This document shows, piece by piece, positions 3,019 to 56,619 of a stretch of DNA of 64,000 nt. The stretch's first letter is position 1, and the number at the start of each line of letters is the position of its first letter. The notes below the pieces were generated by a model, which did no database searches, was not told where the DNA came from, and was given only the letters and a program-made list of their open reading frames with translations. This DNA comes from Takakia lepidozioides (lineage: Eukaryota; Plantae; Bryophyta), in the NCBI GenBank assembly GCA_030704615.1, contig CM060732.1, positions 41,478,001-41,542,000 of the forward strand, written 5' to 3'. A program made the translations under genes and the position numbers.

Positions 3019-5194
3019 TCACTCACATTCCCATATTGCAATCCCTCCAATTGTTTCATTGTTATGCAAGGGCTCTGGATGTGCTAACTCGGCTCCCTGC
3101 TTAATAAATTGCGGGATCTTGCCATCCAACTGAGGTTCAGATATTTGAATGTTTGAACTTCTATGCTGTAGGTTTTTTGCTTGAGCAGAATCCTTGAGGT
3201 CTGAAGTTCCTGATTGCGCACCATCAACCCCTTGATTCTTCTCATCACACTCCCTGGCTGCCATCTTCAGCTCTGCTTCAGTAACCTGTGCCCTCACTTC
3301 TGCATCAATGGGGAGTCCAGCCTGCAGCATTTCATAGTAGACGTCCAATGCCTTATTGAAGTGTGCATAGCGCACATATGCTGCCACCAGCACACCATAT
3401 GTTGCTACATCAGGTGTGTTCCCTGTGCGCCGCATATCTTGTAAAACTCCCTCTACTGCTGGCAGCATGCCTGCTTGTGCATAGAGGTCCAGCAGGAATC
3501 TGTAAATGGTGGGTGTTGGGGGACATTGACTTCGCTGCATACGCTGGTACAGCTGTGTGGCATGAGCAATGCGGCGGGTGCAATGGTACATGTCCATCAA
3601 ACCCTCATACGCTCCTGCTTTCTGCTTCCAGTCTTTATTCATCATCTGCTCAAACAACCTCTCACACTCCACATGTTGCCCTGCTTGCAAGTACACCTTG
3701 AACATGGTGTAAAAGGTATTGGGCTCAATAGGGCATGAGGATTTCTTCATCTCCTTGAAAACGGTAATGGCTTGCTCCAAGTGCTTAGCTCCCCACAGGG
3801 CACTAATCAGTATGTCATAGCAGAAGGTATTGATGGGAACCTTGGCCTCATGCATCATATGCTTCACAGCTAGTGCCTGGTCACACATGCCTGCACATGC
3901 ATACATGTGCAATAGTGTCCAGAAAAGCACAAGATCAGGCTCACATCCATCTTGTTGAAGGTCACTGAAAGCCAATGTGGCACGGTCCACCATGCCTGCC
4001 TTGGCAAAGGCATGAATGAGACTGTTGTATGCCTTTGCATCTGGCAAGATGCCTGCCTCCTTCATCTCCTTGAAGGTGGCTGCTGCAGCTTCAGCATCAC
4101 CTTTCTTTCCATGAATGTCAAGGAGGATGCTGTATGCCACATGGTTGGGCTTAAGCCCTACTTGCTGCATGTCATCAAAGAGATGCTGTGCATGAGCAAG
4201 GTCACCATCGCGCCGGCACACAGCTAACACAATGCAGAAGGACACAACATCAGGTGTCACATCACAATCTTGCATGTCCTGGAAGGTGGCAAAGGCCTGT
4301 GCATGCAGGCCAGCCTTACCGTATGCTTGCATCATGGTGTTATACGCCACCAAATCTGGTCGCGATCCATTCTCCTTCATTTTTTGGAACCACTTTTCAC
4401 TGACTGCCACTTTGCCATGATCACTAGCTGTTTTAATAATCCTCACAAACAGTTTTGTGTCTAGCACCATATTGTGGGCAAGCATATCATTAACCACCAT
4501 CTCCAGCTTTGTCCATTTGCCGGTGTCTACAAGGTTGCGTACAACAGCCAGAAAGAAGAAGGCATCGGGCCTGTACTGGGCTCGCTGCTTCATCCATGTA
4601 TAGAAACTATAAGCCACACGCTTATCAGGCATCAATTTGACAACCACCGTGGCATCCCGTACAGACAGTTGGTGTGCAAGTGGAATGAGCTTGGCCTGCA
4701 TGTCGTCATTCTTGCCCAGCTGCTTCAGCACCTGGATCACCTGCCATGTCACACCGAGCATGCTTCAGCAGTCTAATCTAATTACTTACAGCTTGCATTT
4801 CAGAGCCTACTAACCAGGCCTTGGTGCCAAGAGAATGGTATGATATCCAACAGAAGGCACCACTAGCAGCCAAATGTACTGTTTGGTTTACCTGCTTCAC
4901 GCAACTCAGCTCTGCTATCGCCTGCTCCTTCACCTGCTGCTGGTGACCTATGCCATCATCAGTCTCTACTGCCTCCTCTTCCCGCCCTGCAGTAAAGTGT
5001 AAGTGGGCAGGGGTGTGATCAACCACCTGCCAATTCCTTCTGTTGATTCGTATCCCCCAACCAACTTCAGTCACTGTCCAGCAAGGGCCAGAGATACTAT
5101 GGCTCAGAGAAGTGGATAAATGCTGGGTTGGTGATGGCGCCCTCTTGGCAGAAAGAGCAATAGCTAATCTCCAGAGGGCATAAATACGTGCCAT
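3019..5194 (-). CDS. P-type PPR protein with more than 10 tandem 35-aa repeats; N-terminus (4778-5194) apparently separated from the repeat ORF (3019-4761) by a stop and a frameshift
   Basis: Canonical P motifs (PDLVAYNTMMQAYGKAG, PNHVAYSILLDIHGKKG, PDAKAYNSLIHAFAKAG). The upstream ORF begins with a targeting-peptide-like stretch (MARIYALWRLAIALSAKR). Confidence 0.85.
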
Positions 5195-6117: not shown

Positions 6118-8678
6118 AGACTTTGCAGGGAGTGCAGTGCTCAACATGGTGCAGCTGCCAATGTCTGTGTGATGCGTTCTCAAAGAAAGATCTGCTACAG
6201 TATTGGGTATGCTCCACTTCCCCCTCTGGCATGAAGAATCTGAACACCACAGAAGCTGTCCAACCTTGTGCATTCATGCTGTTACCTGCGAAAAGGTGGG
6301 GACAGAATCTTGCATTGATCTTTGGGATGTTCATGATGCAGGGCAGTGGGGTTGCAAGTATGGAGGCAGACCCAGTTGTTTCTTGGGCATCCCAGTGGGG
6401 GCGCATGTGTGGGTCTTGGCACGTCCGCTGTTTTGAACGGAGTGAGAGAAACTAGAGCGAGGGAATGGAGCAAGAACAGGACGAACAGTTGGGGTACTGG
6501 TGGGAATATGGCTTCAGTGTGCGGCGAGGGACGCTTGAAGGAGGCGGTGCAGCTTTTGGATGTGATGGAGCAACGAGGCTTTTGGGCATATTCCGAGACC
6601 TGCGCTCGTCTCTTGCAGGGGTATGCAAAGACGAAGGCCCTCGCAGATGTGAAGGGGGTCCATGCCCACATCATCAAAAGTGGATTTGAGTCAAACATGT
6701 TCCTTGCAAACACCCTTGTCAGCATGTATTGCAAGTGCGGAAGCATTGGGGATGCGCGCCGAGTGTTTGACAAAATGCCTCAACGAAATGCGATTTCTTG
6801 GACTGCGATGATTGGAGGATTAGCTAAGCAAGGGCAGGGAGAAGCTGCATTTGAACTCTTTCGGCAAATGGAAAGAGAGGGCGTGAAGGCAGACAGGGTT
6901 ACTTTCATGAGCATTCTGAATGCATGTGCTGGGCCAGTAGATCTAGAACATGGCAAGCGGCTCCATGCGGGCATTATTACAGCTGGATTTGAGTCAGATG
7001 TGAGAGTGGGGAATGCCCTTGTCAGCATGTATTGCAAGTGCGGGAGTATGGCGGATGCGCGGCAAATGTTTGATAGGATGCCTAAGCGAGATGTGATCTC
7101 GTGGAATGCGATGATTGCAGGATGCGCTCAGCAGGGCCATGATGAGGAAGCCTTTGGACTCTTTGGGCAAATGCAAAGAGGCGGCGTGACGGCAGACAGA
7201 GTGACTTTCTTGAGCATTCTGAGCGCATGTTCGAGCCCAATGGCCCTGGAATCCGGCAGGCATCTCCATGTGTCTATCATGAAAGCTGGACTGGAGTCTG
7301 ATGTTGGAGTGGGGAATGCCCTCATCAGTATGTATTGCAAATGCGGTAGTGTGGTGGATGGCCGCCGGGTGTTTGACAGTCTGCGCGAACGAGATGTGGT
7401 CTCATGGACGGCGATGATTGCTGGATACTCTCAGCATGGTGATTGTGAGAAGTCTTTTGAACTCTTTCGGCAAATGCAAAGTGCTGGCGTGAAGCCCAAC
7501 GAGGTCGCTTTCATGAGCATCCTGAACGCATGCGCCAGTCTAGCAGCCCTAGAAGAGGGCAAGTGGATCCATGACCTCATCGTCAGATCAGGATTGGAGT
7601 CAGATGTTCGAGTTTCTAATGCTCTTGTCGACATGTATGCCAAGTGCGGGAGTGTGGGTGATGCACGACAAGTATTTGACAAAATTCCTCAACGGGACGT
7701 GGTCTCATGGAATACCATGGTTGTGGGATATGCCCAGAACGGGATTGGTAAGGAGGCCCTCCAACTCTTTGAACAAATGTTACACGAAGGAGTGAAGCCA
7801 GACTCTGTCACATTTGTTGGTGTTCTCTCTGCATGCAACAGTATGGGCCTGGTGGACAAAGGCCATAGTTACTTCCTCTCCATGAGTCATGATCATGGCA
7901 TCCCACCAACAGGAATGCACTATGGCTGCATGGTCGGCCTTCTTGGTCGATCAGGGCAATTACATGAGGCAGAGGACTTCATCAGCAAAATGCCGGTGGA
8001 GCCAAATGCTTCAGTGTGGGGGCCATTGCTTGGTGCATGCAGAATCTATGGTAATGTGGAGGTAGCAGAACGGGCTGCAGAACATATACTCAAATTCAAA
8101 CCACAAGATGCCGGAGTGTATGTGCTGCTTTCAAATGTCTATGGTGCGGCTGGCAGGTGGGATGATATAGCAAAGGTGAGAAAGGCCATGAAGGACAGGG
8201 GTGTGAAGAAGGAGCCAGGGCGTAGCTGGATCGAAGTCAAGAATAGGGTACATACGTTCGGTGTAGAAGATAGATCGCACCCGCAGACCGAGGAGATATA
8301 TGCTGCGTTGGAAAGATTGGATAGACAAATTAAGGAAGTGGGATATGTTCCTGATACACGCTTTGTGTTACATGATGTGGATCAGAAGATGAAGGAACAG
8401 GCTCTTGGCTATCATAGTGAAAAGCTGGCCATTGCGTTTGGGCTCATCAGCACGCCCCCTGGGACACCTATCCGCATAATTAAAAATCTCAGGGTATGTG
8501 GGGATTGCCACACTGCCAGCAAATTTATCTCCACAATTGTTGGGCGTGAGATCATAGCAAGGGATGCCAACCGCTTTCATCATTTCAAGAATGGGGTGTG
8601 TTCTTGTGGGGATTATTGGTGATGACAACTCCACACGCGCCAACACGATCTTCCATTTATGGAGTCTTAAGCGAATGT
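6118..8678 (+). repeat. Left arm of a 2561-bp near-perfect inverted repeat
   Basis: Position x pairs with 20161-x. The ORF track is mirrored (6346-8622 vs 11539-13815, and the shadow ORFs). Boundaries are AGACTTTGCAGGG and GCGAATGT. Confidence 0.97.
6346..8622 (+). CDS. PLS-E1-E2-DYW PPR protein (organellar C-to-U RNA editing factor, DYW:PG type), copy 1
   Basis: 14 motifs L-S-(P-L-S)x3-P2-L2-S2, then E1/E2, PG box PGRSWIE, HSEKLA and CGDCH zinc ligands, terminal DYW. The start is uncertain: the track start is GTG and the first in-frame ATG is at 6508. Confidence 0.96.
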   Translation: MGLQVWRQTQLFLGHPSGGACVGLGTSAVLNGVRETRAREWSKNRTNSWGTGGNMASVCGEGRLKEAVQLLDVMEQRGFWAYSETCARLLQGYAKTKALADVKGVHAHIIKSGFESNMFLANTLVSMYCKCGSIGDARRVFDKMPQRNAISWTAMIGGLAKQGQGEAAFELFRQMEREGVKADRVTFMSILNACAGPVDLEHGKRLHAGIITAGFESDVRVGNALVSMYCKCGSMADARQMFDRMPKRDVISWNAMIAGCAQQGHDEEAFGLFGQMQRGGVTADRVTFLSILSACSSPMALESGRHLHVSIMKAGLESDVGVGNALISMYCKCGSVVDGRRVFDSLRERDVVSWTAMIAGYSQHGDCEKSFELFRQMQSAGVKPNEVAFMSILNACASLAALEEGKWIHDLIVRSGLESDVRVSNALVDMYAKCGSVGDARQVFDKIPQRDVVSWNTMVVGYAQNGIGKEALQLFEQMLHEGVKPDSVTFVGVLSACNSMGLVDKGHSYFLSMSHDHGIPPTGMHYGCMVGLLGRSGQLHEAEDFISKMPVEPNASVWGPLLGACRIYGNVEVAERAAEHILKFKPQDAGVYVLLSNVYGAAGRWDDIAKVRKAMKDRGVKKEPGRSWIEVKNRVHTFGVEDRSHPQTEEIYAALERLDRQIKEVGYVPDTRFVLHDVDQKMKEQALGYHSEKLAIAFGLISTPPGTPIRIIKNLRVCGDCHTASKFISTIVGREIIARDANRFHHFKNGVCSCGDYW

Positions 8679-10290
8679 ACCAATCCACTAGCTTTGCAAC
8701 AGGGCAAACGCCTCCATGCAGACATTATCGAAGCCGGACTAGAGTCAGATATCGGAGTGGGAAATGCCATTATTACTATGTATTGCAAATGTGGTGAGTG
8801 TGCTGGATGCGCGGAGAGTGTTTGACAAAATGCCCAAGCGAGATGTGATCTCATGGAATGCAATGATCACGGGATTCGCCCAGCAAAGGCACAGTGAAGA
8901 GGCCTTTGAACTATTTAGGCCAATGCAACGTCGAGATGTAAGCACAGACAAGGTCACTTTCATAAGCATCCTGAATGCATGTGCCAGTCCAGGTGACCTG
9001 GAAGAGGGCAATCGGCTCCATGCGGCTGTGAGCAAAGCTGGATTGGAGTCGGATGTCCAAGTGGGGACTGCCCTAGTCAGAATGTATTGCAAGTGCGGAA
9101 ATGTGTCTGATGCGCGCAGAGTGTTCGACAAAATGCCTACGCGAGACCTTATCTCATGGAATGCCATGATCGCAGGATTAGCGCAGCAACGACATTGTGA
9201 GGAAAATGCAACAAGAAGGCCTCAAGGCAGGCAAGCTCACATTCCTAAGCATCCTCAATGCATGTGATGGCCCACTAGCTCTGGAACAGGGTAAATGGCT
9301 GCATGCTGGTATCATCAAAGCTGGATTGGAGTCAGATGTGCAGGTGGGCAATGCCCTCGTGACCATGTATTGCAAATGCGGGAGTTTAATGGCGCGTGCT
9401 GTGTTTGACAGAATGCCCAAGCGAAATGATATATCATGGAATGCTCTAATTGCAGGAGTAGCTCAGCAAGGGCATGGTGAAGAGGCAGTTGAACTCTTTT
9501 GGCAAATGCAAAGAGAAGGCATTCACCCTAATGAGGTCACTTTCATTAGTATCCTCAATGCATCCTCCAGCTTGGCAGCTCTAGAAGTGGGCAAGGAAGC
9601 TCATGCCCTCATCAGCAACTCTGGATTTGAGTCAGATGTCCGAGTGTGTAATGCCCTCATTGACATGTATGCCAAGTGTGGGAGTCTAGGAGGTGCTCGG
9701 AGAGCCTTTGACACAATGCCTCAAAGAGATGTGATCACTTGGAATTCAATGATAGTAGCATATGCTCGGCATGGGCTAGGTAAAGGGGCCCTCCACCTCT
9801 TTGAAGAGATGTTGTGGGAAGGGTGTAAGCCAGACAATGTCACGTCGTCAGTGTTCTTTCTGCATGCAGCCATATGGCCCTCGTGGAGGAAGGTAATCAC
9901 TACTTCCTCTCCATGAGAATAGATCATGGCATCACACCCATAGGTAAGCACTATGGCTGCATGGTTGATGTTCTAGGCCGTGCAGGCCACTTGGCTGATG
10001 CTGAGGACTTGATCAACAAAATGCCATTTGAGCCAGATGCTTCTGTCTGGGGGGCCTTGCTTGGCGCTTGCAAAATCCATGGCAACGTGGAGGTAGCAGA
10101 ACGTGCTGCAGAATGTATCCTCAAGATGGAACCTGAAATGCTGCAGTGTATGTGCTGCTTTCAAACATCTATGCTGCAGCTGGCCGGTGGGATGATATAA
10201 CAATGGTGAGGAAGGCAATGAACGATAGAGGTGTACAGAGTGACCTAGGGCACAATTGGATTGACGTCCAGAACAGGGTACATCTCATTC
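8679..10290 (+). pseudogene. PLS-E PPR pseudogene, 5'-truncated, about four frameshifts, ending in a decayed PG box with no DYW core
   Basis: Successive ORF pieces 8598-8825, 8764-9267, 9197-9916, 9874-10200 and 10146-10418 carry P/L/S/E motifs in shifting frames. Ends at LGHNWIDVQNRVH. Confidence 0.9.
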
Positions 10291-11482
10291 CAGTGCAGGT
10301 AACCTGTCACTCCCCAGCACCATTTAGAAGGAGGATGACAGGGAGACAAACTCACAAAATGTCCTTGGAGAACGGCGATCAGCAAGGAAATGTCAAGGCA
10401 GATACAGAAAACAGATGACATACTAGACCAGAGTGAACTTAGATACTGCATCATACCCTAGAGCATAGAGCATGTGCACAGCACACATTTAATCTGGGAG
10501 AAATTAGACAGCAGCACTGCTGGCACAGAACCCTTGCCAGACAGTTTCTGTAGCTAGTTTGTTTACCGACAATATTGGGTCCCAAGTAGTTACTTTCCTT
10601 TAGGCACCTGCTAAAGCCACATTTCTGTGAGGAAGTGCTATAACCATTTAGAGTTTGAATGTGTTGAAGGCACAGATTGTGCCACATACATCTAGTAGAT
10701 GAGATGAAGGTGTTTAGACAGATAAACATCAAATCACCATAGCAGAACATTCAATGACTTGTACTCACAGCCACAAAGATTCAGCCATCCGCAGTCACAA
10801 GATCATGGCACCAAGCAGACATCATACCATACATGATAAACCACTGAGTTGAAAACTTGAGACTTACATCAGGTTTTCCGAAAATAGCGAATGACAGAGC
10901 CCAGATCAAGTAACCAGCACATGATGAAGACTAAACCAAAGAGGAAATTGGGAAGTCAAAAGAGCACCTTCAACAATGTGCACAGTAGCAGATGGGCAGA
11001 TCAGACTGCGTTTTACTGAGATACGCACATGGGCACCATCCATTAAAGCGGTGCCCTTTGTTTTTTGCATCCGTGTGGCATACACTGCCTCAAGAGAGAT
11101 CCTCTGAACCCCAAGGAACTGCAATAAGACTGGTCACAATCTCAGAAAAACATCATTAATATGAAAGATACTCATTAATGTAGGATACTGTTGCAACTGA
11201 AAGCACCGAATGGAGAAGGTTGGAGAAGGGTTCATACCACTCAATGATGCCTTGACTTCAGCTCATTTATTTTCACCAATGACCTCTGCCAAAACCCTGC
11301 AAGCAACAGTTGTGGCCAGTTTACCAAACTGTGAATAGGACAATGCCCAACGCACAATCTGCAAGATTCATGGTTGCCTGTCACAAATGGGCATCAGATC
11401 AACGAGAAATATATGAGAGGTATAACCTCCTTGAATCTTGTGGCCATTAGACTCACCCTGAACAAGACCGACAGCTTGCCAG

Positions 11483-14043
11483 ACATTCGCTTAAGACTCC
11501 ATACACGGAAGATCGTGTTGGTGCGTGTGGAGTTGTCATCACCAATAATCCCCACAAGAACACACCCCATTCTTGAAATGATGAAAGCGGTTGGCATCCC
11601 TTGCTATGATCTCACACCCAACAATTGTGGAGATAAATTTGCTGGTAGTGTGGCAATCCCCACATACCCTGAGATTTTTAATTATGCAGATAGGTGTCCC
11701 AGGGGGCGTGCTGATGAGCCCAAACACAATGGCCAGCTTTTCACTATGATAGCCAAGAGCCTGTTCCTTCATCTTCTGATCCACATCATGTAACACAAAG
11801 CGTGTATTGGGAACATATCCCACTTCCTTAATTTGTCTATCCAATCTTTCCAACACAGCATATATCTCCTCGGTCTGCGGGTGCGATCTATCTTCTACAC
11901 CGAACGTATGTACCCTATTCTTGACTTCGATCCAGCTACGCCCTGGCTCCTTCTTCACACCCCTGTCCTTCATGGCCTTTCTCACCTTTGCTATATCATC
12001 CCACCTGCCAGCCGCACCATAGACATTTGAAAGCAGCACATACACTCCGGCATCTTGTGGTTTGAATTTGAGTATATGTTCTGCAGCCCGTTCTGCTACC
12101 TCCACATTACCATAGATTCTGCATGCACCAAGCAATGGCCCCCACACTGAAGCATTTGGCTCCACCGGCATTTTGCTGATGAAGTCCTCTGCCTCATGTA
12201 ATTGCCCTGATCGACCAAGAAGGCCGACCATGCAGCCATAGTGCATTCCTGTTGGTGGGATGCCATGATCATGACTCATGGAGAGGAAGTAACTATGGCC
12301 TTTGTCCACCAGGCCCATACTGTTGCATGCAGAGAGAACACCAACAAATGTGACAGAGTCTGGCTTCACTCCTTCGTGTAACATTTGTTCAAAGAGTTGG
12401 AGGGCCTCCTTACCAATCCCGTTCTGGGCATATCCCACAACCATGGTATTCCATGAGACCACGTCCCGTTGAGGAATTTTGTCAAATACTTGTCGTGCAT
12501 CACCCACACTCCCGCACTTGGCATACATGTCGACAAGAGCATTAGAAACTCGAACATCTGACTCCAATCCTGATCTGACGATGAGGTCATGGATCCACTT
12601 GCCCTCTTCTAGGGCTGCTAGACTGGCGCATGCGTTCAGGATGCTCATGAAAGCGACCTCGTTGGGCTTCACGCCAGCACTTTGCATTTGCCGAAAGAGT
12701 TCAAAAGACTTCTCACAATCACCATGCTGAGAGTATCCAGCAATCATCGCCGTCCATGAGACCACATCTCGTTCGCGCAGACTGTCAAACACCCGGCGGC
12801 CATCCACCACACTACCGCATTTGCAATACATACTGATGAGGGCATTCCCCACTCCAACATCAGACTCCAGTCCAGCTTTCATGATAGACACATGGAGATG
12901 CCTGCCGGATTCCAGGGCCATTGGGCTCGAACATGCGCTCAGAATGCTCAAGAAAGTCACTCTGTCTGCCGTCACGCCGCCTCTTTGCATTTGCCCAAAG
13001 AGTCCAAAGGCTTCCTCATCATGGCCCTGCTGAGCGCATCCTGCAATCATCGCATTCCACGAGATCACATCTCGCTTAGGCATCCTATCAAACATTTGCC
13101 GCGCATCCGCCATACTCCCGCACTTGCAATACATGCTGACAAGGGCATTCCCCACTCTCACGTCTGACTCAAATCCAGCTGTAATAATGCCCGCATGGAG
13201 CCGCTTGCCATGTTCTAGATCTACTGGCCCAGCACATGCATTCAGAATGCTCATGAAAGTAACCCTGTCTGCCTTCACGCCCTCTCTTTCCATTTGCCGA
13301 AAGAGTTCAAATGCAGCTTCTCCCTGCCCTTGCTTAGCTAATCCTCCAATCATCGCAGTCCAAGAAATCGCATTTCGTTGAGGCATTTTGTCAAACACTC
13401 GGCGCGCATCCCCAATGCTTCCGCACTTGCAATACATGCTGACAAGGGTGTTTGCAAGGAACATGTTTGACTCAAATCCACTTTTGATGATGTGGGCATG
13501 GACCCCCTTCACATCTGCGAGGGCCTTCGTCTTTGCATACCCCTGCAAGAGACGAGCGCAGGTCTCGGAATATGCCCAAAAGCCTCGTTGCTCCATCACA
13601 TCCAAAAGCTGCACCGCCTCCTTCAAGCGTCCCTCGCCGCACACTGAAGCCATATTCCCACCAGTACCCCAACTGTTCGTCCTGTTCTTGCTCCATTCCC
13701 TCGCTCTAGTTTCTCTCACTCCGTTCAAAACAGCGGACGTGCCAAGACCCACACATGCGCCCCCACTGGGATGCCCAAGAAACAACTGGGTCTGCCTCCA
13801 TACTTGCAACCCCACTGCCCTGCATCATGAACATCCCAAAGATCAATGCAAGATTCTGTCCCCACCTTTTCGCAGGTAACAGCATGAATGCACAAGGTTG
13901 GACAGCTTCTGTGGTGTTCAGATTCTTCATGCCAGAGGGGGAAGTGGAGCATACCCAATACTGTAGCAGATCTTTCTTTGAGAACGCATCACACAGACAT
14001 TGGCAGCTGCACCATGTTGAGCACTGCACTCCCTGCAAAGTCT
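11483..14043 (-). repeat. Right arm of the 2561-bp inverted repeat
   Basis: Reverse complement of 6118-8678 with about 11 substitutions seen. Confidence 0.97.
11539..13815 (-). CDS. PLS-E1-E2-DYW PPR protein, copy 2 (6 aa differences from copy 1, all in the DYW domain)
   Basis: 758-aa ORF identical to 6346-8622 except A>V, D>N, A>V, R>C, A>T, R>C after the PG box. HSE and CxxC are retained. Confidence 0.95.
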   Translation of the reverse strand: MGLQVWRQTQLFLGHPSGGACVGLGTSAVLNGVRETRAREWSKNRTNSWGTGGNMASVCGEGRLKEAVQLLDVMEQRGFWAYSETCARLLQGYAKTKALADVKGVHAHIIKSGFESNMFLANTLVSMYCKCGSIGDARRVFDKMPQRNAISWTAMIGGLAKQGQGEAAFELFRQMEREGVKADRVTFMSILNACAGPVDLEHGKRLHAGIITAGFESDVRVGNALVSMYCKCGSMADARQMFDRMPKRDVISWNAMIAGCAQQGHDEEAFGLFGQMQRGGVTADRVTFLSILSACSSPMALESGRHLHVSIMKAGLESDVGVGNALISMYCKCGSVVDGRRVFDSLRERDVVSWTAMIAGYSQHGDCEKSFELFRQMQSAGVKPNEVAFMSILNACASLAALEEGKWIHDLIVRSGLESDVRVSNALVDMYAKCGSVGDARQVFDKIPQRDVVSWNTMVVGYAQNGIGKEALQLFEQMLHEGVKPDSVTFVGVLSACNSMGLVDKGHSYFLSMSHDHGIPPTGMHYGCMVGLLGRSGQLHEAEDFISKMPVEPNASVWGPLLGACRIYGNVEVAERAAEHILKFKPQDAGVYVLLSNVYGAAGRWDDIAKVRKAMKDRGVKKEPGRSWIEVKNRVHTFGVEDRSHPQTEEIYAVLERLDRQIKEVGYVPNTRFVLHDVDQKMKEQALGYHSEKLAIVFGLISTPPGTPICIIKNLRVCGDCHTTSKFISTIVGCEIIARDANRFHHFKNGVCSCGDYW

Positions 14044-15067
14044 CTGAGAATGATGATGCACATCTACATTACAGCGCATCTCGATCGTAACCTGCCAACA
14101 GCCTCTGTTGGGACCTCAATTCGCGTGAGTCTTGCATACGGGCAGGGTTTCTTTCCCACATTTACGGTCACAGACTGTGCAAATGGCCGCACGTACAGTA
14201 CTGAATTACGAGTTCTGCTGTTTTCGGGAGATTTCTGGAGTGCAAAGTGATAGGAGGGACCTCTCTCAAGCTACAGTATGTATGACTGTCCATCTGTGGG
14301 TGGTGCGAATGCTGATTCTTGCAGGGTCAGGTCTGGTGATTTCCGATAAGCCGTAGTGGATGTTGAAGGTGCTCTGCAATTTGGGTGGGTTGCTTCTTAG
14401 TGGGTGTTGTTTACACATTTGGTTACAATCTCATGGTGAGACGGCAAAGCGCCGGAGGCTCGCAAACAGTGAGATGGTTTCCAGCTTGGTGGTACGTACA
14501 TTCATTCGCATCATGTCCTTTTCATGTCGGGACGATGATAGGATGGCAGAATTTCAGCTGAAGGGAGTTGTGGGAATCGGTGGTTTTGGAGATGTAGTAA
14601 TGGGATGGCGGGAGCAGAAGGATAGGGCTCTACACTGTACAGATTCCTATTTTTTGTTTGTATATCATTTTGTCTCTGAAGTGATCTGTTTTTGAGTTTG
14701 AACTGCTGTTTCCCGTTTGCGACTAGAGCGATGTATGTTGCAGGTCACTTTCTTCCTGTCACCTGAGATGGAGGTTGGTAATTTAAAGAAGATGCATCAC
14801 ACTCGAGATCATGAGCTCCTGCCTTTACCGTTGTAATTGACCTCCCTCGGTGGTGGAGTGCGATGGGCTTCCAAAGGCAATTGTGGAGTCTTCGGTATGG
14901 TGAATTTTGATCCCTCTTCTTTGCTCCATTGTTCTGGACAACGTCAATGAAAGTAGCATTGAGGATACTACGGGTACGAATAACATGAGTGAATCATTCG
15001 TACAGCAGTTCTTGACTGTCGCTCCAAATGGCCATGCAGAGTAGTAGGGTTTCGATTCTGGAAAGAA

Positions 15068-16879
15068 ATGGAGTCAGTTGTTCTGGATCATAGTGGCAGC
15101 AAGGTTTTTGCTCTTGGCACGGCCACGATCACCACTACTTCTAATGGAGAGGGAGGAGAGCAACAAAAGGGAGTGGGAAGTGGCGAGGAGTCTTATGGTT
15201 CCAGCAGGGAGTTGAGCACACTCTGTCGGGAGGGACGATTGAAGGAGGCGGTGAAATTTTTGGACACTATGGATCAAGGAGACATTCGAGCATACTCTGA
15301 CGCCTATGCTTCTATCTTGCAGGGTTGTGCTAAGATGAAAGCTTTGGAAGATGGAAAGCAGGTCCATGCCCACATCATTAGGAGTGGATATGGCTCAGAC
15401 TTTTCTCTTGGAAACACACTTGTTAGCATGTATTCCAAGTGCGGAAGTATTTTGGATGCACGGCAAGTGTTTGACAATATGTCTGAACGAAATGTGATAT
15501 CGTGGACAGCAATGATTTCTGGATATGCTCAGGAAGGGTATGGCAAGGAGGCATTTGAACTTTTTAAGGAGATGCAACGAGCAGGGGTAAACCCTGACAA
15601 GGTTACCTTCATCAGCATCCTCAATGCATGTACAGTCCCTGCAGCTCTTCAACAGGGAAAGCAGGTTCATGCTCAGATTATCAATGCTGGGTTTGAGTCA
15701 GATGTGCATCTAGGGAATGCCATTGTCACCATGTATGCTAGGTGTGGGGATGTTACGAGTGCGCAGCAAGTGTTTGACAAGATGCCCGAACGAGATGTGG
15801 TTTCGTGGACTACCCTTGTTAACATGTATTGCAAGTGCGGGAACCTGGTGAATGCACGCCAAGTGTTTGATGAAATGCCAAAACGAGACGTGGTCTCGTG
15901 GACTGCAATGATTGCTGGATATGCTCAGCAAGGGCACAGTGAGATGGCATTCCAACTTTTTCGGCAAATGCAACAAGAAGGTGTGAGGCCTGACAAGGTC
16001 ACTTTTCTTAGCATCCTCAATGCATGTGCTAGCCCAGGAGCTCTGCAACAGGGCAAGCAGGTCCACGGCCACATCATCAACGCTAGATTTGAGTCAGACG
16101 TTCGGCTAGGAAATGCCCTTGTCAGCATGTATGCCAAATGCGGCAGTGTAGATAGTGCACGTCGGGTGTTTGACAAAATGTTTAAACGAGATGTGGTCTC
16201 ATGGACTGCTCTTGTTGACATGTATTGCAAGTGCGGGAGTGTGAAGGATGCGCGACAAGTGTTTGACCAAATGCCCAAACGAGATGTGGTGTCATGGAAT
16301 GCTATGATTTCAGGTTATGCTCAGCGGGGTCATGGTGAAGAGGTTTTTGAACTTGTTCAGCAAATGCATGGAGAAGGATTGAAACCCGATAGTGTAACCT
16401 TCATTGGCATCCTCAATGCATGTTCAAGCCAAGCAGCCCTTGAAGAGGGAAAGCGAGTTCATGGCCGGATCATTGAATCTGGATTTGAATCAGATGTCTC
16501 TGTGGGAAATGCCCTTGTTGACATGTATTCAAAGTGCAGGAGTGTAGTCGATGCAAGGCAAGTCTTCGATAGAATTCCTAAGCGAGATGTGGTGTCCTGG
16601 AATGCAATGATTACAGGATACACCCAGAATGGATATGGCACAGAGGCTCTCCAACTCTTCAAACAGATGCAATGGGAAGATGTTAAGCCAGACAATATCA
16701 CATTCATTGGTGTTCTCACCGCATGCAGCCAGTTGGGCCTGGTGGATGAGGCCCGTCAATACTTCCGGTCTATGAGTCAAGACCATGGGATTACGCCAAC
16801 ATGGAAGCACCATGGCTACATGGCACAACTAGTTGGCCCTTCAGGTTGCTTGGAGGAGGTTGACACATTGTTGACCTGA
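15068..16879 (+). CDS. PLS-type PPR protein lacking E and DYW domains
   Basis: Intact 603-aa ORF of P/L/S motifs including doubled S (SS) motifs. Ends in a degenerate S2 (ITPTWKHHGYMAQLVGPSGCLEEV). Confidence 0.92.
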   Translation: MESVVLDHSGSKVFALGTATITTTSNGEGGEQQKGVGSGEESYGSSRELSTLCREGRLKEAVKFLDTMDQGDIRAYSDAYASILQGCAKMKALEDGKQVHAHIIRSGYGSDFSLGNTLVSMYSKCGSILDARQVFDNMSERNVISWTAMISGYAQEGYGKEAFELFKEMQRAGVNPDKVTFISILNACTVPAALQQGKQVHAQIINAGFESDVHLGNAIVTMYARCGDVTSAQQVFDKMPERDVVSWTTLVNMYCKCGNLVNARQVFDEMPKRDVVSWTAMIAGYAQQGHSEMAFQLFRQMQQEGVRPDKVTFLSILNACASPGALQQGKQVHGHIINARFESDVRLGNALVSMYAKCGSVDSARRVFDKMFKRDVVSWTALVDMYCKCGSVKDARQVFDQMPKRDVVSWNAMISGYAQRGHGEEVFELVQQMHGEGLKPDSVTFIGILNACSSQAALEEGKRVHGRIIESGFESDVSVGNALVDMYSKCRSVVDARQVFDRIPKRDVVSWNAMITGYTQNGYGTEALQLFKQMQWEDVKPDNITFIGVLTACSQLGLVDEARQYFRSMSQDHGITPTWKHHGYMAQLVGPSGCLEEVDTLLT

Positions 16880-17760: not shown

Positions 17761-20700
17761 ATGAATGCACTGGTACTGCAGGCACCACCTAGTAAGTTCC
17801 TCAACCCTCTCTCAAAATGTCATGTCCGCTTGCCTGCAGAGAGAATTCTGTCAGTTCCTGTTGCCAGCAATGCCTTCTCTCTCTCCGTCTCTCTGTCTTC
17901 TTCAGCTTTCGCTGGAGTGAACATTCCCGCCCGTTGTAGCATTATAAGCTCCAGTACCCACTTAATATCAAATTCGTCGACAAGCCCATCTGTCAGATCT
18001 TTGAAACTTTCAGATTTTTGCAGCTCCATCCTCTTCATAAACTCTCGTACGATTCCTGTCAGTGAACCAAGCTTCCTCAATGATATTTCGAGTCATTCTT
18101 CACGGAAAGGGTCGCACAATAACATCGGTCTCGTCGGGGAGCCGCTTGCTCCAAAGACAACGCGTCAATACTCTGAAAGACTCACTCTGTTTCAACCATC
18201 ATTTCTCTCCAGGAAACTCACCTGGCTAAACCCTATTCGGTGTTCTCACCATAACAACCCCTCTCTCTCATCAATGGCTGCCATGCCTTCAGTTTCTACA
18301 ATAAATGAGCTACCTTCAGCAGCTGCGACGGCGACAACACAGGACGCTTCCACGGGTGGTTCTCAAACAGAAGTGCTGGTGCAGTACATAGTAGTACGAA
18401 AGGATTTGATGGACACAATGAAATGGCCACTGGGGAGCGTGATTTCTCAAGGCTGTCATGCTGCCGTTGCAGCAATTTGGCTGCACAAGGAGGATCCAGA
18501 TACTGCCCAGTACTGTGGGCTTGAGAATCTAGACAACATGCACAAGGTTTGTGATTTATTCTTTTCCTTTTGCTGCTACTCTTGGTTTGTCTGGACACCA
18601 AGCATGCATTCAATCAGAGCCTCTTATATCTGATACTCTTCCTGACATTCTCTTCTTCTTTGTGAAGGTGATAATCTGGTATACATGGTTTCTGAATGGT
18701 GTAACTGGATGATGGGATATTGTAATACCACAGCTATTACCAGCTGGGCTATACCATGTTGATAACTGTTGATTTTTCCGAGGTGTTGAGATTTTGACCC
18801 AATATTTAGAACCGACTGGTATCACTCTTAAAATGTTGAAAATCCAAATACTTAGATTTGGCGGGTACGTTATACAGGGCATAATTGTGAGTATAGGCCC
18901 TCAATATAAGAGATGCAAGAATCTTTATGGTTCTTTCAGCACTTGTTCATTCTTTCTGTCTCTCTCTCTTGTATGGACCCTTGGCGCCTCCTGTGGCCTC
19001 TTTTCTCTTGTTCCGTTTTCACTTCCAAGGAACCGCCAGTCAGAACAGATTGCATGAACTAAAAACCCTAGGCAACCAAGTGCCAACAAGAGCAGCCCAA
19101 TACGGCTGTTTCAGCACACGTATTAAACCTGTGCAACCAAGACAAGTAAGCCTTTGAGCCAAGTTAGCATGTCAACCGATCTGCTAAACAAATCCACACA
19201 GCAGTCATTTTGGGGAGGGGTATTGCACCCAACACTACTTGTACATAGAATATGCCAAGGAGATGTGCGGTTAGAAGCGTGTGGGTAATTTTGAACCACA
19301 GTGATTTTCTGTCAGCATCTACCAAATGGACAAAAACGTTTTTTGGCCAACACATGGCGTTGCTCAGATTGTACTCATAAGACGTTGTTTGCCGTAGCCT
19401 TGTGGCCATTGACCCCACGCCCAGTTTGAGCGGGAACAAAAGGGACAGAACCTACCTCTGTCAGGGGCTGACGTTGGTAGTAAGACTTACCTCCATATAA
19501 AGAATTAATCCGGGTTTTCCAGATATCCTCTAGAAATCCCTTCACACAAGCATCAATCTGCTGTGTGTGATTTGCCCAAAAACTAGGCCTCAGGAGGGCC
19601 TGGGCTTTTGGCTCAGCCTCGAGACTTTCAAAGTTGGTAAACAGGGGTACAGGCACAATTCCCGTAATAGATTTGAAGAGAGCGTCTCTTTGGTGAGAGA
19701 ACCCCGGACAGTGTATCAGAAAATGAATACTGTCTTCAGATTGCCCACACAACGGGCAATTGCACTCTCCCTTTCCTCTCTGCTTCTGTTTGCTGTTCAA
19801 AGGTAGGCTTCCAGCCCTGAGTTTAAATTTCAGTCTAGTGCCGAGAGTGGGTAGACCCTTGAGGTCATCCAAGATGTCCTCCCCCATGTCACAGACTGGA
19901 AACAAGTTCAGGGAAGTTTTCTGCCTAACTTCATTTTCATCAGACAATCTCATGGCAACAGACATGGCTGAGGACACTACAGCCTCTAAGTCAGATTTAT
20001 CCAGCAGGGTCAAGACTTGCGGATCCAGGTCCAGGTCCTTGAGGATCTCTTCTACTCTCTTCTGCCAGGACTCGGCCTGTTTGACAGGGCGGTCCTGTTT
20101 CCAAGATATAGAGTCGATTAATTTAGGATATCTGGTGTTGGGCATATGTTGCAGCTGACCCCACCATCTGACCTTGAATTGCTCAGAGAGCAACATGTTC
20201 CAGTAACTCTTTTGTCCAGAGAAGGAGCCAAGGCCTCCCAGTCTTTCAAGCAGCTTTACTTGCCCTGCCTCATTGCTAAGTCCCATGGAATGATATGGTA
20301 GCATAACACAGGCTGTCTAATAATATCAGATAAACTTCTGGGTGAACCGTCTTTACCCCAAGCATGGCCCACATATCTGAACCAATTTCTTCTTACTTAG
20401 CCTTGTGTTGCCCGTCTAAAGGAGGGAAGCCAAGCCAGTGACCTTGAGCAGAGAGCAATGAGGGTGCACCTTCTGCCTTGAAACTTGCCACTAAGGAAAG
20501 TTGGGTCCTGAGGTATGACGTTTGAATTTGGCAAGCAAGAATAGCCTGAACCTGAGGGTCCACAATGCTGAGACGTCCTTCAAATGTCATTATGTGACCA
20601 CATCGTAAGCCACCTGGGTATAAACTATCTTGCTGAGCTGTCTTGTTTGGGGGACCATGCGATGGTCTGATTGTGGAGCAGAGAGTGGCATGTAATTGCT

Positions 20701-31505: not shown

Positions 31506-31539
31506 TCACTAGAATTTGGTGTGTATAATTATGGTATAG

Positions 31540-32390
31540 GGGTTTTTTGACATGGCATACTGGCCTTGTGTGGCCCATTTAGACATCAAAAAACTACTAG
31601 AAAAGGGGGCACAAACAGTGTGCATTGACGCACATTGTTTGGTGCTTCCAACCATGGGGTTTTTTGACATGGCATACTGGCCCTGTGTGGCCCATTTAGA
31701 CATCAATAAACAAGCATAAAGAGGAGCACAAACAGTGTGCTTTGAAGCACATGTTTGGTGCTTCCAATTAGGGGTTTTTTGACATGGCATACTGGCCCTG
31801 TGTGGCCCATTTGGACATCAAAAAACAGGCTGAGAGAGGGGCACAGACAGTGTGCATTGCCGCACACTCTTTGGTGTTTCCAACCACGGGTGTTTTGAAC
31901 ATGGTACACTGGCCCTGTGTGGCACATTTAGACATCAAACATGGCCCATTTTTAAATCAAAAAACAGGCTGAGAGGGGTGCACAAACGGTGTGCGTTGAC
32001 GCACACTGTTTGGTGCTTCCAACTTTGGGTGTTTTCAACTCGGCACACTGGCCCTGTGTGGCCCATTTAAACATCATAAAACAGCTGGAAAAGGGGGGCA
32101 CAAACAGTGTGCGTTGACGCACACTGTTTGGTGTTTCCAACAACAGGTGTTTTGAACTTAGCACACTGGCCCTGTGTGGCACATTTAGACATAAAAAACA
32201 ATCAGAAAGGGCGCACAAACAGTGTGCGTTAACGCACACTGTTTGTTTCTTCCAATTAGGGATATTTTGAACATGGCATACTTGCCCTGTGTGGCCCATT
32301 TTGAAATCAGAAAACAGGCACAGAGGGGGGCACAAAATAGTGGGGATTGCCGACACTATTTGGTGCTTTCAACTGCGGGTGTTTCACTTG
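31540..32390 (+). repeat. Tandem satellite, ~115-120-bp unit, about 7 copies
   Basis: Recurring core GGCA(T/C)ACTGGCCCTGTGTGGCCCATTT..GGGGCACAAACAGTGTGC..TGTTTGGTG.TTCCAA. Confidence 0.92.
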
Positions 32391-33632: not shown

Positions 33633-36001
33633 TTAATGCGCCCATGGCACTCCTACGACCTGCAGATGACTTGTGTCTTCCCCTCGGGCCTTTGCCCGAC
33701 GTTTAGCAATAGCAATTTTTTGATTGTGTTTACAGATTGGTGGAGCCCACCCGCACAATGGGGCGATCCATGCATGCTTGGGGGTAGGGTTGTTTGCTTT
33801 GATTGCTGCATGCAGACGTTCTCCTGCCTCGCTGCAGGCTCGTGCCGACCACTTGGCGTCAAAGGCCCTCCTGGCCAGTCGCTCTTGTGTTCGGGCCTTC
33901 TTAAGAGCATCTTTCTCGATCTTCTCGGCTGCCCGCTTTGCTTTACCTTGCAGGGTCTCATCTTTTTTCTGCTCACGAGCTTGGGTTGCTTCTTCTTTTA
34001 GTCTCACTTTTTGCTCTAGTGCTTCCAAGTATACATCAGATGTCATTATAATTGACTTGATGTAGTCTATAATAGGTTCATCTCCTGATGCTCTTACCCT
34101 TCGATTGACTGCAGGAGCCTCTGGGAGCGTCAAGAATCGGGAGATTGATGAAGGGACCTCTGGTTGGCTAAGAACCATCTCCCAGTCTGCGTCATCATCA
34201 AGCTGCACTAAGGACTCCTGGCTACTGCGAAAGTGTGACTGGTTGTCATCGCCCCTTTCCTGGTCATTGCGCCCATCCTCATCTGGCTCTTCGACCACCA
34301 CAAAGTAGTGGTGGTGATTCTTTTGTATGCTGGGCACATGGTTGCCCAACACCTCTTCCACATGAAGGGCAGAAAGTACGTCTTCTACCTCCCCCTCAGG
34401 TGTATCCTCGTCCATTGATTCTGGCCTGATCTCCTCGGCATGCAGGTCTGGTGTCCCCGGCCCTGAGAAACATTCTATCGGCCCCATCTTTCCTGCCATG
34501 GCTTCTGGATTCAGAGGCCAGATCCCAGAGGTCTTGAATCCCTTGGCAATGTTGGTAGGGGTTAGTCCTTTTTTCAATGCAAGGGAGACCCATTGGGCCA
34601 TATCTTCTTTCAACGCTCCTCTTCTTTTATGTGCCATGGTCCAAACATCTCTATATTTCCTGAAGGCAGTCTTAAAGGGCTTGAACACTGCCACATCAAG
34701 GGGCTGGAGTGCATGGGATGTGTGGGAAGGAAGTGTAATGACATCAAGTCCTACTGATCTTGCTTGCTTGACAACGTCTAGGGTGACGTGTGAGTTGTGA
34801 CCATCCAGAATTAGCAAAATGCCTGTTTGTGACGGTAATGTCATTGCCCATTGCCTTTGCTGATTCCAAAAAATATGATATCCACTTGTGAAACAATATT
34901 GCAGTCATCCATGCTTTTCTTTGCATTGCCATTGTTGCTCCAGATTCACATTTGTGAATGTAATTGCGACGAAATCTTTTCCCTTTGAATATGTAGAAGT
35001 TTGGGATGTAACTTCCTGCAGCATTCATGCAGGTGAGGACGCTCAGCCATTCCCTTTGATCTGGTGTTATAGAATGAACAGATCTGGATCCGGTCTTGGC
35101 CAACAGAACAACACCTCCGTTTCGCCCAGCTCCCCGGACTCGTCACAATTCCATATCCTTGTTGGCCCATAGTTGTGCTTCTCATACATCAGTTTCAGAT
35201 TAGCATAGAACGTCTTTACGTTCTCTGGACATAGTCCCTTGGCCCTCCCAGTTTCTAGTCCTTGAGCTACTCTCAATGAAAGATGTGGATGTCGTGACCT
35301 GAACCATCTCACCCACCCCCAGCCCGGGATTCAGGTGGGCCAAGCCCAAGATCAAGTTGAATTTCAGGTGGACCAAGGCCAACGTCAACCAAATCTGTAG
35401 TACAGCTAGACCAGACAACAACATTGCCAGAGACAAATACTGAAGGACCTGCCGACATTAACACTCTTCGATCTAATGGACCTGCTACGCGTGGGGGCCG
35501 CCCAAGGAGAGGGAGGAGGCCTCTCAAGAATGGAAACTGGACTGATGAACAGTTGCGAGGTGTCATGGCTGCCGTTGACCGTGGAGACAACATCAGATCC
35601 GCAGCAAGGATGTTTTGAAGTGCCTGCAACAAGTCTGAGAAACCACGTTTATGGCGTTACTACCAGTAGGAAGAGAGGCAACAAAGGGACATTAAACGCC
35701 AAGGAAGAAGCTGAACTAGTCCAGTATATTGAAAAAATGCAAGATATCGGGCATCCCTTGACACTAACTCAACTACGTCTGAAGGTGGCTGAAGTTACGC
35801 AAGAGAGAGTCACACCTTTCACAAATGGGAATCCTCTCCCTGGCCCCACTGGAAATTTTCAAGGCCATCATCCTCACTTTGACCTCCATCATTTGCATGT
35901 TTATACCTTTCATTGTATCCATCATCTGAGTCACTTGTGAGTGGTTGGCTACTGATCTGCGTTCCAACGCTATCATCAGCTACCTCGGTATCTGGCAACA
36001 A
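33633..36001 (-). mobile_element. pogo/Fot1-like (Tc1/mariner superfamily, DDE_1/CENP-B type) transposase pseudogene with an inverted N-terminal segment
   Basis: Minus strand carries IWNCDESG, KAWMT, LILDGHNSH and LPSHTSHALQPLDVAVFKPFK. The HTH part (NWTDEQL..IRSAARMF..VPATSLRNH, PLTLTQLRLKVAE) is on the plus strand at 35520-35830. Confidence 0.9.
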
Positions 36002-39800: not shown

Positions 39801-42800
39801 GGCTGCTTGGGATGCAAACATTCTTACTTCCCATCGTCGCTTGGGAAACTCAAGCCTAACTCTGGAGAGTTTTTCTGATGGTGAGGGGCTTGACTTTACT
39901 TACATCTCAATTCTTCTCCCAGTGTGTGAGAATGTTCTCTATTTCTCTTTTCTGTGGGGAGGTACTGAGAAGTACGAATGATGGGTATGTGTGAGGAAGA
40001 ACAGAACTTGCATAACAGCCGATGGAGAAGTACTTCATAACAAGCAAAAGTACTAGACGTAGGGGAGGTGGCCTACCTGTTGCAATAATCTATGCCAGCG
40101 ATCCAGGGAGAGAAACTTAATCGAAATGAAATGGTACTGTAAAGATTGTACTCATAAGACGTTGTTTGCCGTAGCCTTGTGGCCATTGACCCCGCGCCCA
40201 GTTTGAGCGGGAACAAAAGGGACAGAACCTACCTCTGTCAGGGGCTGACGTTGGTAGTAAGACTTACCTCCATATATAGAATTAATCCGGGTTTTCCCGA
40301 TATCCTCTAGAGAAAGAAAAAAAAAAGAAGGCATTGCAAGAAAGAAAAGTAGACAAAATTTATAATATCCACTGAAAAAGATAGAGATGGTTGTGTATCT
40401 GTGTCTGCCTACATGTGCATGTTAGATAGCAATGGATCTCTTCTTCACAAGTGCCACAAATACCTTTTGACAGGAAGGAAGCATGAGGTGGAACTAGAAC
40501 TGGAAGGCATGGGTGGGGGAGGGATTGTTCAACTCGAGGTAATCTGATATCTGATGGTCCCATGGATCTTTGGGCATCCTTTGGAGTCATTGATGTGGTC
40601 TTTACCGTTGTTGTAGTTTGTACCTTGCAAAACATCCTCTGGTGGAATGGTATAAGATGTTTTCCTTCTTTCCTTCCTTCCTTCCGTCCTTCCTTTCCTT
40701 TCTAAAGAATACCAATGTTGGCTGAGGCCTTGAGCTTTGACAACCAGTAGTGCTGGGCAGCTTACCTTAATTAGGCACTTTCTCTCCATGTGATGTTTGG
40801 TCTAATTTGGTGTGGGTTTTCTTTTTTGCTTGGGGCCCTCTGTGGATGTTACTGTGAGATCAGGGGCAGATACCACTGTCTCTTTAGATACTCTCCCCGT
40901 CTTTGGCAGTTGCCATCAGCTTTCAGAATCAGAGGTGCTTTGCATCTCACCCATGCATGAGTCACTTCATCTCCAATGGGCCCTCTAGGCTCCCTGTGCA
41001 TGTAAGGTATTTAATTTTGTGGTTATCTCTCTCCTTCTCGTATGGTCTAGTGGGCCAAAGTCCATTTGTGTCTGTGGCTGTCAGGTTCAATACAGAAGCT
41101 TCTCCGAGCTGGACTCAGAGCAAGTCTGGTGGCATCTGCCATTTCTTACAGAGCTTTTCCAGGTCAAAGGTCTGAAGGGGGCCTTTAAGACAGTATTTGG
41201 CACAGAAGGTATCAGGGCAGGTGATTTTGTAAGGTCTGCTCTGGGTTCTATACAATTCTTAGATCAAGAAAAGGCGAGTACAGCACCAACAAATTCAGCA
41301 GACTCCCAGGATAGGGTGGAAAAACCTCAGGACAGGAACTCGAGCTTTCTCCCAGGACAGACCTTCCAAGGAGGGGTGAAGCCTGCTACAGGACAATCTG
41401 CCTTTGAAGAAAGAGGTAGCAATATTAGAAATATCTTGGGAAATATCCAAAGTGACCAGAAAGCAGAACTTGAAGTTAGGGAAAGTGATGGTCAAAACAG
41501 CAGGTCAATTTCACTAAGTGAAGCAACTACAAAATCCTCAGAGGGGTTTGGCATAGAAAGAGCTAAGCCAAAGAACACCAATGGGGGACCTGTTCAAGAG
41601 GGAGAGGGAGACAAGGAGGGCGACTACATTAGTAGTGTGATCAAGGCTGTTAGCCTGGTTTTGGGGTCTTTGGGCGTGGATACTGCTGACGTCCCCTCCA
41701 TAGATTGGGCTATATGGCAGACGAATCAGGAAGCAACTAAGAAGCTGGGTTATGAGTCCCAGAATAGGGCTGAGGCAGAGTACATTGAGAGTGGGCTAGC
41801 ACTACGAAATGAACAAGACGAGTCCACATCCACTCGGGATCCCCTTGAAGTTAGTGCTCCTTCCAAATTTTCACTTGCTGGTTTGGCAGGATATTCATGC
41901 ATGGGCTCAGATGAAAGTATTTGCAATAAAATGAATGTGAATTTTGTCTTCTCTATAACTGGAACTTGTGATAACTATGAGGTTCTCTTGTTGGAATGTA
42001 CGATTACTTGAGCTTACGGGTAAAGCACCTCCCATGGCACATTGATCAAACACAGTCTTGAAGACTTCAGTTCTCTTTTTGAGTTGCAGGTTCAGTGTCT
42101 GAAAGATTTACATGATTGTAGTAGACAGTGGTCTGTAATCATATAAACTAGTCCCCCGCTTATGTGGTTTTTCGTATTGAAATGGGCTTCTATCTTTCTG
42201 CAGACATTCTAAAGTACCATTCTTCCCCCCCATCCCGTCCCCTTCCAGTTGCAGGATTGTATAGGCAGGGTCTATGACTGTTGGAGTTTATAAGAATATT
42301 TCTTGTGTATGTGGGTCTTCCTCTCTTTTGTACCTTGGTCCCTTTGTGCCTCCTTGGATGTAGATTATTTATTGTTCATTTCTTGCTCTTGGATGTAGTT
42401 TTTGGGCTGCTTGTGGAGGTTCCCTCTCTCTTTCTTGTTTCATGTTAACATATTGTGTCTGTAGGTCTTGGGCCCCTCAACAGAGGACTTGAAGCAAGCA
42501 TCTCAAAACTTGTTGAAGTACACGGAGGAGTTTTTGGGCTCATTGGCAATGGTGGCCACAGCCTTTGCAAGATCTCAAAAAGCAGAGGGTGCAGAGGGTT
42601 CGGTTAAAACTGGCATTCCTAAGGATCTTGCAACACCAGAAGAACCGAACAAGAAGACAAACAGTAAAGATAAGGTTTTGGAAGCGTTGGAAAGAGAGGG
42701 CAGTGATGATCAGGAGAGAGACGTAACCCGACAGATGTTTCAGACTGCCGAGAGTGCAGTTGAAGCTTGGGCTGTGCTGGCAACTTCCCTGGGGGGTCAA

Positions 42801-55984: not shown

Positions 55985-56560
55985 GTATCATGCAACCATG
56001 CACCTCCAATGCCCTTTTCCAGGGCTGCCAGGCTTGCACACGCACTGCAAACACACACATGATGTGGTCAAACTTCACCCCTTCCCCCATCATTTGCTTT
56101 CAGGTCTCCAAAGCCCCATCCAGCACCCATGCTCTGCACACCTTGCAAGCATCACATTCCACAACACCACATCTCATTCAGCCATAGTGTTGAACACTCC
56201 CTTGGCATCCTCAATGCTACCATATTTGGCATACATGGCCACCAAAGCAGTGTTCAGGATGACATCTAGAACAATTGCAGATTTGATCATGTCACCAGGG
56301 ATCTCTTTGCCCTTTTCCAGGGCTGCCAGACACACTGCAAACACACACAAACCTTATGTCGGCGGGCTTCACCCCTTCCCCCATCATTTGCTCATAGGTT
56401 GGAGAGCCTCCATCCCGCACCCTTGCTGTGCATACCCCGCAAGCATCGCACTCCACGACACCACATCTCGTTCAGCCATAGTGTTGAACACTCCCTTGGC
56501 ATCCTCGATGCACCCACATTTGGCATACATGTCCACCAGGGCATGGGCAGGGTTCAGAAT
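55985..56560 (-). pseudogene. PLS PPR pseudogene fragment (two near-duplicate S-P-L units)
   Basis: ALVDMYAKCGCIEDAKGVFNTMAERDVVSWSAMLAGYAQQG; 56010-56250 resembles 56310-56540. Confidence 0.8.
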
Positions 56561-56619
56561 GACATCTGGTAATCTGACAAACATTCTCCTTTTAGAATTG
56601 TTCCAACAAATGCCCCAAC

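Follow-up and report, generated by a model that had tools for sequence, protein, structure and literature searches.

The 64,000-nucleotide (nt) window that we analysed, from the bryophyte Takakia lepidozioides (assembly GCA_030704615.1, contig CM060732.1, positions 41,478,001 to 41,542,000 of the forward strand), carries two nearly identical copies of a gene for a PLS-E-DYW pentatricopeptide repeat (PPR) protein, placed tail to tail as the two arms of a long inverted repeat. We read this arrangement as a young inverted segmental duplication of one such gene within a birth-and-death cluster of PPR paralogues, and we put the probability of this reading at roughly 0.7. The evidence that carries it comes from the sharp borders of the arms, the position and kind of the few differences between them, and the junction at which the left copy runs into a dead PPR gene. 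In appearance the locus is an ordinary gene duplication of recent date; production of silencing RNA would be a potential of its geometry. All positions given here count from the first letter of the window, and the coordinates of the features are collected in Table 1.

Two DYW genes converge across a spacer

A repeat search of the window found two inverted arms of equal length, separated by 2804 nt, and a base-by-base comparison of one arm with the other counted 11 mismatches (99.57% identity). In the same direct comparison, similarity dropped to random at once past all four arm ends. There are no runs of N in the window, and no remnant homology was found among the flanks, the spacer and the rest of it. 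The open reading frames (ORFs) of the left copy (A) and the right copy (A') converge, each ending shortly before the inner border of its arm. An earlier sequence-only reading of this DNA had reported arms of 2561 nt, a spacer of 2804 nt, 758-codon ORFs and a shared tail of 56 nt after the stop, and all of these numbers were reproduced on recomputation. It had omitted the PPR pseudogene, here called psiB, that fills most of the spacer.

Both copies matched the same set of Pfam domains: PPR_2 (5.9e-85), PPR (3.3e-73), PPR_1 (1.8e-60), E_motif (4.5e-22) and Eplus (6.7e-06), followed by DYW_deaminase, which scored 148.8 bits (3.9e-44) in copy A and 143.3 bits (2.1e-42) in copy A'. The PPR array has the 303-nt periodicity of P-L-S triplets, and both proteins keep PGRSW at residue 624 (the PG box), HSE at 690, CGDCH at 718 and the terminal DYW at 756-758. 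On these features, A and A' are predicted to be PLS-E-DYW proteins, the kind that edits organellar RNA by C-to-U conversion. The best database relatives of copy A in a word search were at most 57% identical and came from Ginkgo, Cryptomeria, Diphasiastrum and mosses, together with a Calypogeia protein; with no match above that identity, no orthologous locus was at hand by which to polarise the event. The exact proteins of copy A and copy A', in both their 758-residue and ATG-start versions, were absent from a collection of 15 billion proteins, as was that of the neighbouring PPR frame that we call paralogue C.

The figure of 758 codons describes a mechanical ORF that opens at GTG. The earliest in-frame ATG of copy A is at 6508 (codon 55), immediately before the first PPR motif, and a TGA at 6334-6336 closes the main frame. 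Homology to the presequence regions of paralogue C and three database relatives, with the common motif CR[AV]VG..W, extends over 6337-6507, and the opening ATG of paralogue C aligns with an ACC in copy A. Three ATGs, at 6327, 6333 and 6336, fall outside the main frame, and paralogue C has the same layout. Off-frame ATGs occur a short way upstream of this conserved motif in both copy A (6327-6345) and paralogue C (15020-15070). That the two have this in common hints at an unusual start or at a 5' exon or intron that has escaped recognition. When the N-terminal 200 residues of 120 relatives were compared with the window in search of an upstream exon, they matched nothing outside the known ORFs. 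A possible in-frame 5' model that stays within the arm would consist of a mini-exon at 6231-6295 followed by a 46-nt interval (6296-6341) acting as a very short intron.

The twins differ mostly at their inner ends

The mismatches between the arms are unevenly spread. One lies at arm position 881 and the other ten fall in the last ~375 nt, a clustering that would arise by chance with P = 4e-8. Of the 11, nine are transitions at CpG (eight) or CHG (one), and there is one transversion. The last 373 nt of the arms have diverged by about 2.7%, and 7 of the 13 CpG sites there have changed, as against 1 of 80 in the first 2188 nt (Fisher 1.4e-6). The observed/expected ratio of CpG is 0.44 for the window and 0.58 for the arms, the highest value in the neighbourhood. 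Because the whole window is depleted of CpG, we take the CpG-biased spectrum to be the genomic norm and not the mark of RNA-directed methylation.

When the differences were polarised by CpG logic together with the family consensus, the derived state fell to A' at seven positions and to A at three, with one left unpolarised. The six amino-acid changes (A654V, D670N, A697V, R710C, A724T and R734C) all belong to A', and the three changes in copy A are all silent. Copy A agrees with the family consensus at five of the six residues that differ. At the last five of these, the state of copy A is found in 76-91 of 95 relatives and that of A' in 0-9 of 95. That the right copy took every amino-acid change, and took them at conserved positions of the deaminase, suggests that one of the twins is drifting towards loss.

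The simplest reading of this pattern would be an older duplication in which gene conversion from arm to arm later made the outer 2.2 kb uniform, with CpG decay as the main source of mutation. Error-prone repair synthesis was also considered as the source. It appears unlikely because the changes (four C>T and three G>A) lie on both strands, at CpG, and mostly in what is probably the template copy.

The inner junction and the order of events

The pseudogene psiB opens in the middle of a PPR motif, shifts frame at least four times and ends within an E+ motif without a DYW domain; a search 3' of it found no DYW remnants. Over its final ~430 nt it shares 78-81% identity with copy A (direct-repeat families D9 and D10). 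At the junction 8678|8679, the 3' piece of copy A enters psiB in mid-motif and in register. We compared this junction with an in-register PPR consensus built from nine same-register units of the window. Identity to that consensus was 30/40 right after the junction and 16/40 right before it. Of the 14 nt that precede the junction, 9 agree with the consensus (P = 0.003), and the final four, ATGT, match it perfectly. This patch has the signature of a 4-nt microhomology join that would have been made when the copy was created. In-register fusion to psiB through microhomology argues that the left copy is the derived one and that its native 3' flank was lost in the process, and we regard this polarity as probable.

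From the anatomy of the locus, its mutation pattern and this junction we infer the parent copy, the gene conversion and a plausible order of events. At the outset, an older PPR gene or pseudogene, B, would have faced the right copy, A', tail to tail. A' would then have been copied in reverse through a rearrangement mediated by microhomology, by template switch or end joining. The 3' end of the new copy, 56 nt past the stop, would have been joined at ATGT to B midway through one of its PPR motifs, with loss of the 5' half of B. The arms may then have diverged chiefly through decay of methylated CpG. Later conversion between the arms would have made the outer ~2.2 kb alike again, the old divergence surviving in the last ~375 nt.

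Several observations weigh against this history. The arrangement and the order of events are read from the sequence of one assembly, and gene conversion is deduced from only 11 differences. As an alternative to conversion, a local methylation hotspot might have reached the inner end of A' by spreading out of the spacer, which is poor in CpG. The native-looking 3' flank belongs to the copy with the damaged deaminase domain, contrary to the logic by which the new copy is the one that decays. Finally, the last 13 codons of the arm, translated in the frame of psiB, are weakly PPR-like (P = 8e-5, or 0.03 once the last five residues, which form the microhomology patch, are taken away). This leaves room for the opposite polarity, in which the left copy would be parental and the right one would have been inserted, inverted, into a tandem array of A, psiB and C.

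An extension of psiB by 39 nt or more into the arm was among the candidates that we set aside. That stretch is ~23% identical, and a true 39-nt extension is unlikely because the other psiB units keep the VTFxSILNAC helix almost perfectly. Neither outer flank gave a signal of homology to the region upstream of paralogue C (z 0.2 and -0.6), and a flank similarity hinted at by MAFFT was not significant. A short imperfect match at the outer junction, seen by eye after a 2-nt slip, is only suggestive.

A possible hairpin locus

The geometry of the locus would allow a long hairpin RNA. A plus-strand transcript that ran from A across the 2.8-kb spacer into A' would be expected to fold into a near-perfect 2.5-kb hairpin. 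Cofolding of the inner 400 nt of the arms paired 393 of 400 positions at -787 kcal/mol, compared with -219 kcal/mol for a shuffled partner. The sequence-only reading had proposed that read-through from the left copy could form double-stranded RNA (dsRNA), and as far as the pairing of the arms is concerned that proposal stands. It is possible, then, that the pair works as a natural hairpin locus, in which read-through from A via psiB and the rest of the spacer would give a 2.5-kb duplex, diced to 21-24-nt small interfering RNAs (siRNAs) that would methylate or cleave A, A' and related PLS genes. Such a role is compatible with the duplication history that we prefer and would add a function to it. 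We nevertheless consider it unlikely.

Near-perfect complementarity over 2561 nt speaks for such a role, as do precedents of the same geometry that make siRNAs (PAI1-PAI4, VIM4-VIM2, Lgc1 and GmIRCHS). The bias towards CpG transitions is compatible with methylation of the arms, without being specific to it. The ends of the two genes also differ in a way that favours read-through from the left. On the minus strand, the part of the spacer outside psiB is the 3' flank of copy A', and it holds a canonical AATAAA at 11266-11271, 268 nt past the stop. No canonical AATAAA follows the stop of copy A in the whole 2.8 kb; weak poly(A)-like variants appear only from +1393, with an ATTAAA at +2420. Taken with the junction, at which the native 3' flank was apparently lost, this agrees with the earlier suggestion that the left copy lacks the parental terminator. 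The poly(A) signals of plants are loose, and because of this the absence of AATAAA is weak evidence.

Other features of the locus argue against a working hairpin. The left copy came with no more than 228 nt of the sequence upstream of it and so may not be transcribed, and any read-through would have to pass 2.8 kb that contain several weak poly(A)-like hexamers. The arms, with the highest CpG ratio of the neighbourhood, bear no sign of long dense methylation, and no CHH-type changes were seen between them. The reach in trans would also be small. Exact matches to the arms account for 5 of the 1792 21-mers of paralogue C (123 with at most two mismatches) and for one 21-mer of psiB, whereas the P-type PPR gene to the left of copy A has none even at three mismatches. 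The further claim that the locus silences neighbouring paralogues is weakened to that extent, with few 21-mers of the arms matching C and none matching the P-type gene. We would give only a slim chance to the fuller proposal, that the pair is transcribed across both arms and that siRNAs from the hairpin dampen its own PLS-DYW genes and some paralogues through 21-mers in conserved motifs.

A scan of the window with Rfam found no RNA family. The locus does contain the long near-perfect gene repeat that typifies inverted-repeat silencing loci, and is a candidate for a hairpin-RNA locus of a kind already familiar. Its arms of 2.5 kb and loop of 2.8 kb are not the short fold-back with a discrete pair of microRNA (miRNA) and miRNA* by which a proto-MIRNA is recognised, and it would be at most a precursor stage of one.

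Artefact and mobile-element explanations

An artefact of assembly, in which one real gene, or two genes at separate places, were falsely joined as an inverted pair, is a further explanation to which we assign a low probability. Placing near-identical repeats of 2.5 kb is difficult unless reads exceed ~8 kb. The differences between the arms are CpG-type transitions gathered at one end, not scattered indels, and both copies are therefore real sequences and not the product of read errors. Fold-back chimeras have little or no spacer, whereas here the arms stand 2.8 kb of unique sequence apart. Unique sequence, free of gaps and of N runs, begins at all four arm borders, the inner junction carries an ordinary microhomology signature, and a collapsed or duplicated haplotype would look different.

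A gene-carrying transposon with long terminal inverted repeats (Pack-type) or a retrocopy is very improbable, and we reject such an origin because a target-site duplication is lacking at 6117|6118 and 14043|14044, the arm ends recur nowhere else in the window and the 56-nt 3' piece is not followed by a poly(A) tail, and because the arm takes in 228 nt upstream of the ORF.

Comparison with known inverted repeats

The closest parallels are endogenous repeats of plant genes. The tail-to-tail PAI1-PAI4 repeat of Arabidopsis Ws and Cvi triggers methylation of all sequences that share identity with it (PMC3203196; PMC13213937). Like the Takakia locus, it consists of two near-identical endogenous gene copies set tail to tail. 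The two differ in that experiments on PAI have shown siRNAs, methylation and transcription across the repeat, whereas the Takakia pair is known from sequence and has a 2.8-kb spacer with a pseudogene in it. The soybean I locus, GmIRCHS, is a perfect tail-to-tail repeat in which read-through from an upstream promoter yields dsRNA against the gene family (PMC3406792). It too is an inverted repeat of a gene-family member, set tail to tail; its arms, however, are pseudogene pieces 78 bp apart under a captured foreign promoter, and those of Takakia are full open frames 2.8 kb apart.

Rearrangement between opposed paralogues has produced similar outcomes. At VIM4-VIM2 in Cvi, a 2.8-kb deletion permits read-through and dsRNA formation that silences the gene family (PMC13213937), and in rice Lgc1 (GluB4-GluB5) rearrangement of opposed paralogues led to read-through, dsRNA and silencing of the family (PMC10647759). 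What these loci would have in common with ours is a rearrangement by which intervening or terminator sequence was lost between opposed copies. Both arose by deletion between existing paralogues, and the VIM4-VIM2 pair is head to head. The Takakia pair, in contrast, would stem from a recent inverted duplication, and its arms are far more alike (99.6%).

Inverted gene duplication is also a route to young MIRNA loci such as MIR161 and MIR163, and miR161 targets PPR genes (PMC1790633). The proposed start of that route, an inverted duplication of protein-coding sequence, resembles the Takakia locus. MIR161 and MIR163 are short fold-backs that have drifted to discrete DCL1 products, and the perfect 2.5-kb PLS-DYW duplex of Takakia would correspond at most to the very first stage. 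The PPR targets of miR161 are P-class genes, and we know of no small-RNA control of PLS-DYW editing factors. If siRNAs were made from this locus, it would show, in a bryophyte, the inverted-duplication route to hairpin and miRNA genes at a very early point, at which the locus still encodes protein. It would also be the first case of small-RNA control of DYW-type editing factors, in parallel with the action of miR161/TAS2 on P-class PPR genes of eudicots.

Palindromes of the human Y chromosome are large, and their arms are kept alike by gene conversion from arm to arm. They share with the Takakia pair near-identical arms, sharp borders, a unique spacer and divergence that is uneven along the arm. 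The arms compared here measure kilobases, as against tens to hundreds of kilobases on the Y chromosome, and conversion is drawn from just the few differences described above.

As it stands, the locus documents turnover in a PPR-DYW cluster, with inverted duplication, probable conversion, CpG-driven decay of a deaminase domain, and dead or truncated neighbours. This is useful for annotation and will not surprise a specialist. The 11 differences between the arms provide built-in markers specific to each copy; their positions in the left and right arm are 6999/13162, 8306/11855, 8352/11809, 8353/11808, 8435/11726, 8473/11688, 8515/11646, 8545/11616, 8639/11522, 8655/11506 and 8657/11504.

The PPR neighbourhood and the rest of the window

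Copies A and A', the dead psiB and the truncated paralogue C form a small birth-and-death cluster of PPR paralogues. Paralogue C is 53% identical to copy A across residues 1-547 of the latter and ends in the P2/L2 region; the following 900 nt contain no E or DYW remnant. It is a truncated relative of the editing factors and a possible target in trans. The best matches of the P-type PPR gene on the left are liverwort proteins at 42-44% identity. A lone PPR-like fragment of ~140 residues lies farther away at 56126-56548 on the minus strand; it is ~40% identical to the repeats of copy A and is probably a piece of a pseudogene.

Table 1. Positions of the inverted arms, their genes and the neighbouring PPR features in the window
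Feature	Position	Strand	Description
P-type PPR gene	3019..4761	-	580 aa; left neighbour, divergent from copy A
Left arm (copy A)	6118..8678	+	2561 nt: ORF with 228 nt upstream and 56 nt past the stop
Copy A open frame	6346..8622	+	758 codons; GTG start as listed
Divergence cluster	8306..8657 (partner 11504-11855)	+	10 of the 11 arm differences
Post-stop stretch common to both copies	8623..8678	+	Exactly 56 nt; stop ends at 8622, arm ends at 8678
psiB, PPR pseudogene	8679..10310	+	First ~1.6 kb of the spacer; cut at both ends
Non-PPR part of the spacer	10311..11482		Unique in the window; CpG observed/expected 0.25
Right arm (copy A')	11483..14043	-	2561 nt; from repeat search and direct comparison
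Copy A' open frame	11539..13815	-	758 codons; same domain set as copy A
Paralogue C	15068..16879	+	603 aa; PLS PPR ORF placed head to head with A'

A dispersed repeat of ~0.8 kb brackets the whole PPR cluster, with copies at 519-1332 and 19366-20180 that form an inverted pair of 97.7% identity. This nearly concentric outer pair was considered as the sign of a larger palindrome, a candidate that we rejected given the further copies of the repeat, which are partial and lie at 40143-40311 and 56618-56771. One copy (19375-20304, minus strand) contains a 309-residue ORF without a Pfam match, and the repeat probably represents an unclassified transposon family. A transposon remnant is visible at 33633-34844 on the minus strand, where a 403-residue ORF matches the C-terminal part of a DDE_1 transposase of the pogo/Tigger type (E 1.3e-12). 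A tandem array at 31538-32384 comprises ~7 copies of a 117-118-nt unit with matches of 77-86%, with low GC content and a strong GC skew. At 17761-18633 on the plus strand, an ORF of 290 residues partially matches the peptidyl-tRNA hydrolase PTH2 (E 1.7e-08) and is probably one exon of a host gene.

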